DNA of 33,576 nucleotides from Vitrella brassicaformis CCMP3155 (lineage: Eukaryota; Protista; Chromerida). This document shows positions 3,001 to 10,900 of the stretch, in pieces. A program made the position numbers and the translations under genes. The stretch's first letter is position 1. Every line of letters begins with the position of its first letter. Where the stretch lies: positions 1 to 33,576 of the forward strand of contig CDMY01000670.1 of assembly GCA_001179505.1 (NCBI GenBank), written 5' to 3'. Below the pieces are notes generated by a model. It made no database searches and was not told the DNA's origin. It saw nothing but the letters and a program-made list of their open reading frames with translations.

Positions 3001-4255
3001 AGTCGTGGCGTACATGCTAGGCCTCGTAAGCACACACACTGACGGAGTGTGCAAAGCGGAATGGACTCTGAGCAATTCTTGTGTCTTTCCTTGTGTGATT
3101 GTGTACGATGGATGCAGTTCGTCATCGTACCGTGGCGCAGCCGACGAGACAGCGCATTCGATATGATACTAAAGATCTTGTCATTGCACATGATGTATGT
3201 GAGATTCATCTCACTAATGCTCTCACGCACTCACTGATCCTATCAATGTCCTTTCAGCGGATTGCTCGGGATCTTTTTCATCGAAGAGCCCATCCGTCCC
3301 GCAGACTACCCAATCGCCATCACCTTCGTCGGTCGGCTCCCCCCCCNNNNNNNNNNNNNNNNNNNNNNNNNNNNNNNNNNNNNNNNNNNNNNNNNNNNNN
3401 NNNNNNNNNNNNNNNNNNNNNNNNNNNNNNNNNNNNNNNNNNNNNNNNNNNNNNNNNNNNNNNNNNNNNNNNNNNNNNNNNNNNNNNNNNNNNNNNNNNN
3501 NNNNNNNNNNNNNNNNNNNNNNNNNNNNNNNNNNNNNNNNNNNNNNNNNNNNNNNNNNNNNNNNNNNNNNNNNNNNNNNNNNNNNNNNNNNNNNNNNNNN
3601 NNNNNNNNNNNNNNNNNNNNNNNNNNNNNNNNNNNNNNNNNNNNNNCCCCCCCCCCCCCCCCCCCCCGCAATGCCATGCACACGGACGCACTTACGGATA
3701 TGTTTCTCTGTGTGTGTGTGTGTACAGCTGTGCTGCTTCTTCTTGAGTTCCTGGTCGTCATACCCGCCCTGAGCATTAACGTCCTCAATCTGGCAAGGAT
3801 GGCAGACATCACATAGATGGCTGTCCGTCGTGATACTCTCTGCCTGCATGTGTGCCTCAGGTGCGTCCGGCGCGGGAGGATCTGACGATGTCGCAATTCG
3901 GACCGAGGATGACGTGGCGCAATTCAATTAAGTCGGTCGGAGACTCACAAGGCTGCCAGGCAATCGTCCCACAAGAGGCCCAGACATCTACATACGACCC
4001 CGCTGCACCACCGCAGGTAAATGGGCCTGGCCAGTTTGCTCTCCCATCTCTCTCTCACACCCTCTTTGGTTTGTGTGCGTGTCTCTGTGTGTGCGTGTGT
4101 GCGTGCAGTTCTCATGCGAGATGCCTGCGAGAGGTGGGGCATTCTTTGACGACATCATTCGGTGTGAGCTGCCGCATGTGCTTGGCGTACTGTGGGCATA
4201 CGCTTCGGCTGACTGTCCCGCTGAGGAGGCGGCCCACACCAATCGCGCACTGCAA
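1..4255 (+). CDS. 5'-truncated multi-exon membrane receptor-like protein: periplasmic-binding/Venus-flytrap-like C-terminus + GCC2/GCC3 (ephrin-receptor-like) Cys repeats + about 9 TM module + cytoplasmic tail
   Basis: Hand-spliced exons <1-188, 280-588, 703-933, 987-1175, 1287-1680, 1770-2013, 2071-2190, 2337-2420, 2525-2714, 2773-2929, 2986-3025, 3118-3194, 3258-3331, 3728-3792 (or to TAG at 3816), 3861-4016, 4109-~4255 keep one frame. Motifs: FDTFWDANLRFDKDNRLNGAFVMLQQ; repeated CxxCPxGT/HF units; TM-region motifs IVLSFVQ, DCFDHPNGTASVRQFPHVLC, FRYFYQRF..WWEIIRMGYRLL. The 3' end is uncertain and may extend to about 4800. Confidence 0.8.
3347..3646. other. Assembly gap (300 N) flanked by poly-C, inside an intron
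   Basis: N run. Flanking exons (end 3331, start 3728) are phase-compatible, so no missing exon is required. Confidence 0.95.
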
Positions 4256-5435: not shown

Positions 5436-5612
5436 CAGACACACGCGGCCGCCAGCCTGTGCTTATCTAAAGCTTGACCGGCTTGTGGTCGTGGACAGTG
5501 TCCACGACCACATGTGCACAAGCCGGCCACATTTTCATGATCAAGCCATAATACGCACACACCAGCGCACACCTACACAAGGAATGGCTCGTCTGTTTGT
5601 TTTGATTGAAAG

Positions 5613-5749
5613 GTCACACGGGTTACGTGACGATAGCCACGAAGGAGGCGCCACAGGCCGAGCAAGCGCAGCAAAAGCCGCAGGAGCAGGGGGAGGGGAC
5701 GGGGACGGGTCAACAACAAGCAGAAGAGGGCAACGATAAGAAGGGCTAG
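5613..5749 (+). CDS. Putative isolated terminal exon (G)HTGYVTIATKEAPQAEQAQQKPQEQGEGTGTGQQQAEEGNDKKG*
   Basis: Follows a T-rich tract ending in AG (gtctgtttgttttgattgaaag). Open to TAG at 5747-5749 with coding-like composition. No upstream exon could be assigned. Confidence 0.4.
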
Positions 5750-6013
5750 GCGTGTCTGTTGCATAGTGATTGGCCGGGCGTGTGGGTGGCTGCATTGCAT
5801 TGCTGGCTGGAACGGTGGATGCCTGACATTTGTGCTGCATGTGTGTATCATATGCGCCACAAATAAATCTTCACACTCATTGGTCTCGCAACGCACGAGT
5901 CAACCGCGTGTGAACAATTCGCACGTCCAAAAGCCGGCCAATCATCAGCCAAAAAATCGCATACAGATGACACAGCTGTCCGCCTCCCTCCCTCCCTCGC
6001 TCTCCGCTCCCCA

Positions 6014-7338
6014 TTACAGCTTGAGCTCGATCCCATAATGTGTGAACTCGCAGTCGAAGCCCATGTCCTCGAGAATGTCCGCCACGCGGCGGCCGAGCAG
6101 GTCGCCTCCGACCTGTCTAAGCTGCTGTTTCAGCCAATTGTCGTGTTGCACCCAATTGGTCCAGCACCCGATGTCCAGCACCAACTTGCAGGCCAGGCTC
6201 TTTGCCATGTACTCCAACATGAATTCGTTATCACCTGAAACGGACTTTTTCTCATGATAAAACAGACTTCAGCGTGCGCTCTTGTGATCGCTCTGCTCCT
6301 CTTTAGAGGTCTCATACATCAGTGTAATGACAGTGATTCTGCAATGGGACGGGCCGCTGGATGAGACATGAACGAACGAATCACTCTGTCATTCTCTCGA
6401 GTCACACGAGCGTGTGCTTGTCAGTCAATCAGTGAATCAATCAATGATGGGTCAAGAGTGGGCAAGTGGCGCCGGGGAAGCCGACGGGGGAGGTGGGTGG
6501 GTGTTTCTCTATGTGGTGGCCGGCTATGTTGACCATGTATGGCTGATGTGAGACACTCATGGCCGGCCACCTCGTGGCCAGTCAGGCCAGGATCACGGCC
6601 GTCTCCCAAGCGAAGCAACCGAGGAGGGTTGTCTGTAGTGATGCAGTGATTCACTAAATGATTGAATGAATGAATGAATTGAATCAATTCATTGATTGAC
6701 TGACAAGCAAGCACACACTTATGTGACGCGAAGTGTTTTGTGCTTGCGTCATGGCTGGGTCGTTTGTGAGTTTCGCACAAGCACTTCACTGCAAATGCGT
6801 CGCATTCGGATCATTCGGGCCTGTAAGGGCTCAAGGCTTGCCTGACGCTGCAAGAAGTCTGTTTCATCATGAGAAAAAGTCCGTTTCACGTGATAACGAA
6901 TTCATGGCGTGTTCTGCCTCCTCCTGCAGCTGGATCATCTTGCCGTTGCGGATGCGGCTCACCTCTGCGAAAGGCACCTTGCTGATGGCGATCTTGTCCT
7001 CGGGCATGTCGATGTTGAAGTAGCTGAACTCCTTCTGCAGCTGGGCCTTGCTGATGTTGTGGGGCACGTGCACGGGAGTCCCGCGGCGGTAGAAGTCCAG
7101 CACATACTCAAACAGATCTCCATTGGCATCTGACAACACACAGACCTGACGGCAGTGCTCGTCCTCTCTCTACAGCGATGCTTCGCCACGCACCGATGAA
7201 GATGGATTCGGCCTGGCTGGGGCGCCACTGGTCGTCGACGAGTTTGGCCAGCAGAGTGTTGGGGTGCTTGCTGAGGGTGGACTTGGCCACCTCGTACGCC
7301 TTGCCGCCCACATTCAACTTCACGACCTCGACAGACAT
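6014..7338 (-). CDS. BTB/POZ (KCTD/T1-type) domain protein, interrupted by a TIR element that is probably spliced out
   Basis: Exon 1 7338-7194 (MSVEVVKLNVGGKAYEVAKSTLSKHPNTLLAKLVDDQW..IFI); GT-AG intron 7193-7130; exon 2 7129-6890 (DANGDLFEYVLDFYRRG..LQKEFSYFNI, a classic BTB_2 pattern); proposed intron 6889-6235; exon 3 6234-6014 (DNEFMLEYMAKSLACK..ELKL*). Confidence 0.88.
6222..6902. mobile_element. Non-autonomous TIR (MITE/foldback-like) element of 681 bp, introner-like
   Basis: 6222-6270 is the reverse complement of 6854-6902 (49 bp, 2 mismatches: 6235/6889 and 6259/6865). CATG flanks both sides (6218-6221, 6903-6906). Removing the element plus one CATG gives the in-frame ...AEHAM-LEYMAK.... 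No transposase recognised inside. Confidence 0.85.
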
Positions 7339-7969
7339 GCCGGAGGTGGGGATGCTGGTGATGGCGGACTCTGAAGGACGGCTGCTGATGCTGCAACGGG
7401 TGCCAGTATTCCTGCAACATTCTCGTTTGTTTTGTGGTGGTGGCGGATGGGTGCTCTAACGTCACGGCCGGGCGGCCAGGATCCCTGTCCAGGGCAGGAT
7501 CAGTGATGCGTGTACGTGGGGCCGGTACGTTCGTTGCACTGCACTGCCGCACACAAGAAGTGTCAGTGTCTACCCACCTCGTCCATCCATCCAGCCAGGT
7601 AGGAGGTAGTCAGGAAGACATGTACACGCACCTTCCTTCCTGTTAAGCACCACTTGCAAGCGTCTACCGCTGATGCAAAAACCAGCATCCCAACCATCCC
7701 AAGAGGGAGGGAGGGAGGGAGGGAGAGAGGGATGAGTCAGTCAGTCGTCAGTCGGTCAAGAGAAACCTACACCAACAGCTGGCCAGCTGCCCGGCCTGAC
7801 CTAAACTGACTGACGTGCAGGACCGACCGGCAGGACAAGACACGGCTGCCTGTCGGTCTGTGTGTGCAAGACTCGCTCCCAATGGCTGAGCTAACTCGCC
7901 ATCCCAATGAACGCACACTCACACACAAATACTCAGTCAGTCAGTCACTGTGGAACTGCAGTTGCTTAG

Positions 7970-10900
7970 TCAATCACCCTCCTGTTGAGGCTGCTCCTGC
8001 TGCTGCGGCTGTTGCTGCTCGACGGCATGTCCGCCCTCACTCTCCATCTGGCCCTTGCCCTCCTCCTTCACTTCTGCTGCACCGCCCGACTCCTCAGGCG
8101 CCGCAGCAGCAGCGGCAGCGGCAGCAGCTTTCTCCCCACTGCCACCAGCCGACTCGCCTTCGGTCTCCTGGGGTGCAGGTAGGGGTGGGGGCGGTGCAGC
8201 AACGTCAGCCATATGCTCATCGTCAACTTGACCAGCTGGCGCTGCAGCAACAGGAGCGGCAGCAGCAGAGGCAGCCGATGACGCCCCTCCGTCGTGATGA
8301 GAGGGCATGGCATTGGGTGGTGGGATGAGGGGTGGAAAGGGTTGGGGATGGGATGCGAGGAGAGCGCTGGATAATGGGGGCTGTGGCTGGGGAACCTTGC
8401 CCTCGTTGATGCAAGTCGGGCAGTAATACTTCTCCGGCTCCTCCTGAACGAAAGACAAGCATGGAAGAAAGAGGCGATGGCCTCTGTGTGTGGTGGTGGT
8501 GCTGTCTGTTGTCTCACCGTCATGTTGATGCACTGCCTGTGGAAGACCTTGGGGCACGTCTCGCAGCAGATGACGTCACCTGCCTTGTGGCAGACGCTGC
8601 AGTGGTAATGCCACCCGTCCGGACCCACAGCCTCCTGACACGCAGTTCAACAGACAGACAGACAGACGGCCATGCCAAACATACGAATGCAATGTGTCCG
8701 AGCCTCCGACTGACCAGGTCAGCGGGACCCTCCTCGGTCTCCGCCCTGGCAGCAGCAGCAGCAGCAGCAGCAGCGCCGGCCCTTGCAGCCCTACGCCCAC
8801 GCCCAACCTCCTCGTCCACCGGGTCCATCCGTCGGCTGGGCCGCCCTTTGGCCTCAGAGCACCGCCGGAGGTTCTTCATGACCTGCTGCTCGCTCGACTC
8901 ACTGTCCATCAAAGACTCGTCGTCGCTCGTGTCGCTCTCGGCCGAGCTCTCCTCCTCAGAGTCCTTTGCGCGGCGACGTGGGGCGTTGCGGCGGCCGCGA
9001 CGGTCACGGTGACGGTGACGCTTGGGGGGCTGGTTGAGACCCTCTAGCCGCCGCTTGTGCCTGAGTTCTCGCTCCATCGCCTGACGACGCTGCTTCTCCT
9101 CACGGTCCTCCTGCAAAAGGCCAAACACAACACGTGAGAGTGTTGTTCCCATGCGCCGCTGTGTGTGTATAGGAGTGTCTTGGTGTGGTGTCTGCGACCC
9201 ACCCTGGGGATGAATATGTCGGAGAATGCGTCATGGTCGGAGGGCTCTCTCATGCGCCGCTCCCGCAGGCCGTATCGCCCCTCCACCTTCATCTGCTCAC
9301 GCCTGGCGCGCCGCAGCCCCCGCCCACCCATGCCACCCACATCGCCCCCACCCAATGACGACATGCCGCCCCACTCGTCGGCACCCAACGATGCATCGTC
9401 CTCGTGTGCTGCTGCAGCAGCTGCTGCTGGGGGAAGGGGTGGTGGGTGTGGCTGTTGTGCGAGGAAATCGGCCATGTACTGCATGCGCCTGGGAGGGAGG
9501 TTCTCGAGCTCTTCGTTGGTCCATGCCATCTGGCCCCTCCGCTGCCTGTCCTCCTCTCGCCGGGTCTCGTACGCCAGCTCCAGCTCCCTTTGGCGCGCCT
9601 CGTCGGCGTACTTGCGGTGCCGCGCCTCGTGCGCCTTGAGGACGTTCTCGCGCTTCTTGACACACACCTGCAATCTGCAAAGGAACACACAGACAGACAG
9701 ACAGTGTGGCGTGATGTGGGGGGGAGTTGGGTGGTCGGATCGTTACTGACCTTTTGAGCAGCCAGAGGGCGCATGTGGTCAGCGTCGATATGGTCGATGC
9801 GTGACTGACATCCTGATGATATCGCCACACAAAAGACACACACACACACACACTGTGTATGAGGGAGATCTGGCCTCCTTGCCCACTCCCCAGCCGCCTC
9901 TTCCGTCGCTGGCTGACCTTCCTCCATGCGGCCTGCTCTACCCCTGTGCCGTCGAACACCTCATCCACGAGCTGCCACGACTCCTCGGGCGCAGCCTCCC
10001 TGAGGTCGCCATGATAGTAGTCGACATCCATCGCCACATACGACGGGGCAGCAGCAGCTGCAGCGGCTGCTGCTGCCGCTGGGACTTCTGCCGGGGGTGG
10101 GGGTGCGGCTGCCGCCGCTGCCGCTGCCGCTGCAGCTGCTGGCGGTGCTACTGGTGCACTGGCTCCCTCATCCTGCTGCTGCTGCTCTCCATCTTCTTCT
10201 TGGTCTCCGAAGACATCTCTGAGCCTCTTCTCGTCCATGTCGCCACTGACAGCGTCCTGCGCCGCCTGTGGCATGTCTGTGTCGCGGCGATGGTCGTGGT
10301 CGTGGTGGGGGTGAGGTTGGTTCTGCAGCTCAGGTGGCGGGCTGGTGGGCTTGCTCGACGGGGGTAGGCTCCTGTCGGCCCGCCGCTTCTCGCGCTCCCG
10401 CCGCTCTTCGTCCTTCCTGCACCTGGAGGCGTTCAGGGCCACCTGCACCGACGACTCGAAGGCCAGCAGCGCCGCTCGAACGTCGCCCGGGGACAGCTCG
10501 TGGTGATCGTCCTGCATCGCAAACACACGAGCAAGTTTGCTGGAACGGTGCTGGGCTGTACCTACCATGTTGTCGACGATCGTGAGGCTGAGATCGTCCC
10601 GCCAGTTGGGCATGTCGTTCATGAAGGCGTAGAGCGGCGTGGTGGGGTACTCGTCGCGCACCAAACCCGTCTCGCGCATGCGCCGAGCCGCAACACGCAG
10701 GCCATCGAACACGTCACGCGCACCTGCACACGCAAAACACAGAGAGGGTTGGGNNNNNNNNNNNNNNNNNNNNNNNNNNNNNNNNNNNNNNNNNNNNNNN
10801 NNNNNNNNNNNNNNNNNNNNNNNNNNNNNNNNNNNNNNNNNNNNNNNNNNNNNNNNNNNNNNNNNNNNNNNNNNNNNNNNNNNNNNNNNNNNNNNNNNNN

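Follow-up and report, generated by a model that had tools for sequence, protein, structure and literature searches.

A young MITE-like insertion splits the last coding exon of a BTB gene in Vitrella brassicaformis

The last coding exon of a BTB gene in Vitrella brassicaformis CCMP3155 is interrupted by a transposon that inserted recently and belongs to a multi-copy family; we regard all of this as secure. As to what became of the gene, we think the probable answer, though by no means a certain one, is plain disruption by a recent insertion without effective rescue. According to this explanation the host gene, which belongs to a small paralog family of BTB/K-tetramerisation type, was hit in its last coding exon by a non-autonomous, MITE-like TIR element, which inserted at a CATG and duplicated those four letters. 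In the reference strain, transcripts would then run on into the TIR, where the reading frame ends after 11 foreign codons; the outcome would be either a 135-aa BTB-only product or a transcript that is degraded by surveillance, and the loss would be tolerated because paralogs exist. A GT/AG pair lies 13 nt inside each end of the element and would be a by-product of one inherited TIR mismatch. In-frame splicing between these sites is possible, but they are probably not used efficiently.

The window, that is, the whole stretch of 33,576 bp that was analysed (all of contig CDMY01000670.1), carries the host gene on its minus strand. The gene encodes a BTB_2 domain (PF02214) that spans exon 1 and exon 2. 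Exon 1 (7194-7338) starts with the ATG at 7338 and holds the first half of the domain. It is followed by an ordinary intron of 64 nt (7130-7193; TCG/GTGCGT...TGTTGTCAG/AT); no other solution yields the 135-aa protein of the annotation. The upstream part of the interrupted exon (6903-7129) continues through the second half of BTB_2 to ..EEAEHAM, and the downstream part (6014-6221) reads MLEYMAK...GIELKL, followed by the stop codon. Homologous sequence forms the C-termini of the paralogs. The element thus splits the last coding exon exactly at ...AEHAM/LEYMAK... (upstream context ...QLQEEAEHAM), as a reading made from the sequence alone had proposed. The public annotation gives a 135-aa protein (CEM29310.1 / A0A0G4GHU1), which ends at a TGA inside the TIR (6867-6869, minus strand), and a separate 68-aa gene with no domain (6220-6014). 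The latter is an annotation artefact of the insertion, being the orphaned 3' half of the BTB exon.

No gap opens at the insertion site when the host gene is aligned with three paralog-type proteins, P0004, P0002 and P0007 (...EEA..M/LE.YM.K..; for example EEADDLM-EQYMVK), which share a C-terminal ..LEDLGF.. motif; P0004 (213 aa) and P0002 (231 aa) are confirmed Vitrella proteins. The gapless alignment indicates that the downstream 68 codons originally belonged to the host gene and that the ten extra residues of the predicted spliced product, NSLSRDNEFM, are not ancestral. The expectation that paralogs would lack this insert is borne out, the alignment being contiguous across the site. Three Vitrella BTB paralogs, the host gene among them, are 53-55% identical and their intron positions do not match. 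The host gene has its intron at IFI/DANG (7130-7193), P0002 has one at TKDQ/LKKEF (L005, 10241-10342) and P0004 (L002, 10001-10642) has none, a pattern that points to apparently recent intron gain or loss within the BTB paralog family. Such turnover speaks in general terms for the idea, discussed below, that the element may itself have become an intron.

The element occupies 6222-6902 on the minus strand and consists of 681 bp of non-coding DNA bounded by 49-nt TIRs that differ at two positions (TIR positions 14 and 38). The left TIR (6222-6270), which we call 'C-type', reads ..ATCACCTGAAA.. on the plus strand and on the coding strand supplies a candidate acceptor; the right TIR (6854-6902), 'G-type', reads ..ATCACGTGAAA.. 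on the minus strand and supplies a candidate donor. A CATG lies directly outside each of them: the copy on the left-TIR side (6218-6221) provides the ATG for the M of MLEYMAK, and that on the right-TIR side (6903-6906) the ATG for the M of AEHAM. As CATG is palindromic, each 49-nt TIR and its CATG form one arm of a 53-nt inverted repeat (6218-6270 and 6854-6906) with 96% complementarity. This is the sole inverted repeat free of low complexity in the 33.6-kb window, in which the TIR occurs at these two sites alone (0 matches expected by chance). Every coordinate of the 681-bp insert, its two-mismatch TIRs and the doubled CATG first noticed in the sequence proved correct. Between the TIRs lies an inner inverted repeat (6397-6441, partner 6687-6731) of 45 nt and 76% complementarity, which rises to 96% over a 23-nt part. 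The element has no Pfam domain, no Rfam match and no homologous protein for its internal ORFs, and its longest ORF retrieved 0 matches when used as a protein-search query. We rejected an RNA gene or coding cargo inside the element, given that there was no Rfam match and no protein domain. Elsewhere in the window, positions 3347-3646 are an assembly gap (a run of N with poly-C on both sides), which produces an apparent low-GC bin at 3001-4000.

To describe the family, contigs of four sequencing runs (X1, X2, X4 and X8) were placed on window positions 5500-8000 and their depth was summed. Inside the element the summed depth was 240-872 in X2 against 21-24 in the flanks, 50-179 against about 6 in X1 and 86-385 against about 11 in X4; in X8 it was 23-165. 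From read depth the family has roughly 10-40 copies. Contigs from other copies, carrying several distinct foreign flanks, leave the locus at 6221/6222 on the left and at 6902-6904 on the right, and these positions are therefore the true ends of the element. The suspicion that the TIRs mark a multi-copy family is borne out, the depth in all four runs exceeding that of the flanks 10-40 fold and foreign flanks occurring at each end. Depth is highest over an internal core (6508-6675), at about 25-50x the flanks depending on the run (about 30-36x in X2), and this core may be shared with further related elements. In the contigs of the four runs the stretch 6424-6507 is variable and close to single-copy.

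The palindromic target had left it ambiguous whether the duplication was CATG or AT. Some copies already diverge right after 6902, which sets the conserved element end at ...GAATT and favours the longer form: the duplication is most likely the 4-bp CATG, and the 2-bp AT is less likely. In two other copies the letters directly after the element end, in right-hand flanks, are GATC and CGCG. The family may prefer palindromic tetranucleotide targets, a suggestion that rests on two or three cases. In other copies 6249-6316 is replaced by GGCCT (window positions 6248-6317); this variant accounts for roughly a quarter to a half of the copy depth there. Some contigs share just the outer 30 nt of the TIR (6872/6873) and then run into a different interior, ..TTTTTCTATAGGGTGGCCGGCTTTTTCTAT. 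Together the GGCCT variant and the contigs with a different interior suggest that there is at least one related subfamily, or else a foldback relative.

Searches with a 22-mer of the TIR drew a blank in JGI metagenome contigs, GTDB genomes and IMG/VR, and neither the rest of the window nor a further 40 kb of Vitrella DNA from around the paralogs contained another copy. Woo et al. (2015) reported about 0.17 Mb of class II elements in the Vitrella genome and described no such family, and the family is probably undescribed so far. By every testable criterion (TIRs, a duplication with a matching empty site, small non-coding sequence and multiple copies) the element qualifies as MITE-type. Like MITEs it is short and non-coding, with long near-perfect TIRs, a short duplication, many copies, presence/absence polymorphism and strong foldback. 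Unlike the MITE families against which it was tested, it combines a palindromic 4-bp CATG duplication with AATTCGTTATCAC... termini, and a 4-bp palindromic duplication is only a hint as to superfamily.

The age of the insertion is shown by a marine-sediment metagenome, X8, which contains DNA of the organism at at least 99% identity. One X8 contig (depth 2) joins position 6217 to 6903, skipping 685 nt, and four letters at the joint could belong to either side. Its structure is precisely that of the allele before insertion, with one CATG. We take the joint as real because the 26-letter short side of the contig is what a bubble in a k = 31 graph would leave (26 + 4 = 30). We rejected the joint as a spliced form, since the ends of the skipped segment are not GT..AG on either strand. 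The same metagenome contains the filled right junction (6873-6952, depth 6.3) and a flank contig that stops at 6221. Filled and empty alleles are thus both present in X8, indicating that the insertion is young and still polymorphic; together with the paralogs that lack the insert, the exact empty site upholds the proposal of a recent event. In this environmental sample the filled allele seems to outnumber the empty one (depth about 6 versus 2), a finding that would be easier to explain if the insertion were harmless and that counts against plain disruption.

The three culture DNA runs contain filled junctions alone (5618/5975-6250 and 6873-7696), and no empty-site contig was found in them. These data bear on whether the inverted structure might be a misjoin in the assembly, with the gene intact in the organism. 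Such an error might be suspected, as no single run contig spans the whole element, the repeat having collapsed in the short-read graphs. Both flank-TIR junctions are nevertheless present in each of the three independent culture runs, and the filled junction recurs in the unrelated metagenome X8, making an assembly artefact extremely improbable. DNA 95-100% identical to the locus (6056-7569) was also seen in X8 and X11-X17, marine-sediment and microbial-mat metagenomes from different studies. It follows that the alga, or very close relatives, occur free in sediments and carry at least two alleles at this site.

The main alternative to plain disruption is that the element is an introner-like intron gain, in which the asymmetric TIR brings a donor and an acceptor 13 nt inside the ends and splicing is the main fate of the transcript. 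The gene would then keep its function, and its product would be a 201-aa protein with the ten-residue insert NSLSRDNEFM. We regard this as unlikely, although several features of the sequence favour it. The candidate 5' splice site is a GT at 6888-6889 and the candidate 3' splice site an AG at 6235-6236 (GTCCGTTTCAG/GTG), both on the minus strand, where the interrupted exon reads HAM, then aattcgttatcac/GTgaaa ... gtccgtttcAG/gtgataacgaatt, then catg ttg gag for M LEY. Joining 6890 to 6234 is predicted to give an open frame of 201 aa, with the junction ..TTATCAC/GTGATAAC.. (in longer form ..AATTCGTTATCAC/GTGATAACGAATT..). The predicted remnant is 30 nt, made up of 26 nt of TIR and the 4-nt duplication, and is in frame, whereas the unspliced frame stops after NSLSRETDFFS (TGA 6869-6867). 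On all of these points the sequence-only reading was accurate: both dinucleotides are present, the AG exists owing to the TIR mismatch alone, the frame arithmetic of HAM-NSLSRDNEFM-LEY is right, the joined frame is open and the unspliced stop lies where it was placed.

Both the GT and the AG hinge on a single C/G asymmetry at TIR position 14. A mismatch is required for such a pair, because in a perfect TIR a GT at one end could not be mirrored by an AG at the other. Among the 294 possible single changes to the TIR, five give a mirrored GT/AG pair in a given orientation, and just one of the 294 does so while preserving the frame with a 4-bp duplication. With two mismatches, a mirrored in-frame pair would be expected by chance roughly once in 150 cases, before any discount for its having been noticed post hoc, and this rarity lends the intron-gain idea some weight. 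Further points in its favour are that the 26 nt left over from the TIRs form a perfect palindrome with two of its three frames open, that the element sits in the sole orientation in which the candidate sites work, and that the acceptor (TTTCAG/G) is good, with a CTGAAG about 30 nt upstream. Positions 6235 and 6889 show no reported variant letters, and both C-type and G-type ends occur at many times single-copy depth. It is therefore probable that the whole family has inherited the asymmetry, which would then not be private to this copy, as far as short contigs placed by best fit allow us to infer, and family-wide asymmetry would again suit an introner. So would the commonness of the filled allele in the environmental sample.

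Other features of the sites are less favourable. The donor, CAC/GTGAAA, has no G at -1 and none at +5, and U1 pairing normally relies on a G at one or other of these positions. It is weak next to the verified local introns TCG/GTGCGT, CAG/GTGGGA and GGG/GTGAGT, a small sample in which only three or four introns were trusted; CAG/GTGGGA comes from comparing transcript L006 with genome L005. Only genes with a single intron escape ambiguity when exon structures are derived from gene ranges and product lengths; for other genes there are up to 10^18 solutions. In the predicted fold, both candidate sites are buried within the 53-bp stem formed by the two TIRs, with the donor G opposite the acceptor G as the only mismatch near the predicted base of the stem, and both sites would be sequestered once the 3' arm had been transcribed. 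The length of the proposed intron, 655 nt, is also a point against intron gain. Vitrella introns total 16.4 Mb in about 22,800 genes with a median of six per gene and average about 100 nt, so that this one would be about six times the usual length in the genome.

The annotation weighs on the same side. Augustus produced the gene models for Vitrella, with RNA-seq junctions from TopHat2 serving as intron hints (PMC4501334); had a 655-nt GT-AG junction been well supported, one would expect the two gene models to have been merged. Instead, this copy, the only one inspected, is annotated as exon plus intergenic DNA rather than as an intron. That the annotation gives a 135-aa protein and a 68-aa gene despite the RNA-seq hints is one of the points that favour disruption; the split model could, on the other hand, reflect low expression. 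The four runs X1, X2, X4 and X8 are all DNA, as the 64-nt intron of the gene is not skipped in them and depth is flat over exons, intron and intergenic sequence, and a run marked 'RNA?' contained none of the sampled words of the locus. When the 135-aa and 68-aa proteins were used as queries, a collection of 5.8 billion proteins returned just the proteins of the annotation and the paralogs, with no joined or spliced product. The same collection yielded no assembled transcript of the host gene, either spliced or unspliced; paralog P0002 is present in it from MMETSP and JGI transcript assemblies. A 24-mer of the predicted spliced footprint had no match in JGI contigs, which we assume to include the two MMETSP transcript assemblies of Vitrella. 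In addition, the supplementary table of Gozashti et al. (2022) scores Vitrella_brassicaformis_CCMP3155 as aquatic and without introners, with Aureococcus and Symbiodinium positive.

Taken as a whole, the evidence leans against efficient splicing of the element, in so far as this can be judged from the sequence and its annotation. Of the proposal that an intron gain had been caught in the act, the recent TIR transposon in a BTB exon stands, and actual splicing does not find support in an RNA-seq-guided annotation that splits the gene. The name introner fares similarly: the in-frame GT/AG is there, and against it are the weak donor, the missing spliced footprint in JGI contigs and the negative survey. 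It accordingly seems doubtful to us that Vitrella hosts an active introner family whose insertions, when in the right orientation, would become 655-nt introns that add ten codons.

Splicing might also take place in some less orderly way, through other pairs of sites or in a minority of transcripts, leading to frameshifted or shortened products and no clean rescue. By enumeration, 64 GT-AG pairs across the insert would keep an open frame, including 6962/6251 and 6962/6245. The exonic donor at 6962 (GAG/GTGAGC) is far closer to the local consensus than that at 6889. Joining it to the best acceptor, at 6235, would break the frame; joining it to the AG at 6251 or 6245 would keep the frame but delete 24 codons. 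Transposons in exons, as with maize Ds1 and dSpm, are often spliced imprecisely through several alternative sites, and mis-splicing from 6962 appears as plausible as tidy rescue. Set against this is the annotation, which shows no hint of such an intron, and we consider cryptic splicing of this kind rather improbable as the fate of the gene. Plain disruption thus remains the reading that we prefer.

Known systems offer partial parallels to the element. Introners of Aureococcus bring their own donor and acceptor, and the mRNA gains 12 bp (Gozashti et al. 2022, PMC9860276, Fig. 2F-G). They share with the Vitrella element the proposed logic that residual bases and duplication add up to whole codons (here 26 + 4 = 30 nt), and they are a published precedent for the intron gain proposed at this site. 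In Aureococcus, however, splicing is documented and many copies are annotated introns, whereas the Vitrella element has a weak donor and lies in a gene annotated as broken. Dinoflagellate introners with TIRs and 4-bp duplications are known from Symbiodinium microadriaticum (PMC9860276, Fig. 2B) and also from Polarella and Amoebophrya (PMC12130899, PMC7789003). Compared by description, the dinoflagellate introners resemble the Vitrella element in their TIRs and 4-bp duplication and in coming from marine algae of a related lineage (Myzozoa), which again provides a precedent. They differ in that one splice site comes from the duplication and the mRNA is restored exactly; splicing of the Vitrella element would leave 30 extra nucleotides.

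The maize elements Ds1 and dSpm are likewise transposons in exons that have a usable donor and acceptor in their terminal repeats and are removed imprecisely in a way that can keep the frame. Their splicing has been shown with cDNA, typically uses several alternative sites and gives partial function, whereas the sites of the Vitrella element are read from its sequence.

Overall these results describe a clean, datable transposon hit on a coding exon in a compact, intron-rich genome that is poor in DNA transposons (about 0.17 Mb of class II elements), with the filled and the empty allele both still present in nature. What is new here is the family of about 10-40 copies, the empty and filled alleles in a metagenome and the paralogs whose alignment runs on unbroken through the site. 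Should the predicted splice prove true, it would be a new instance rather than a new principle, as a mechanism of this kind has already been published for other algae. It would nonetheless extend intron-generating transposons to the chromerids, photosynthetic relatives of apicomplexan parasites, and would mean that the birth of an intron is still segregating in natural populations. The locus would then offer a segregating filled/empty pair with which to measure directly the cost of a new intron and its rescue.
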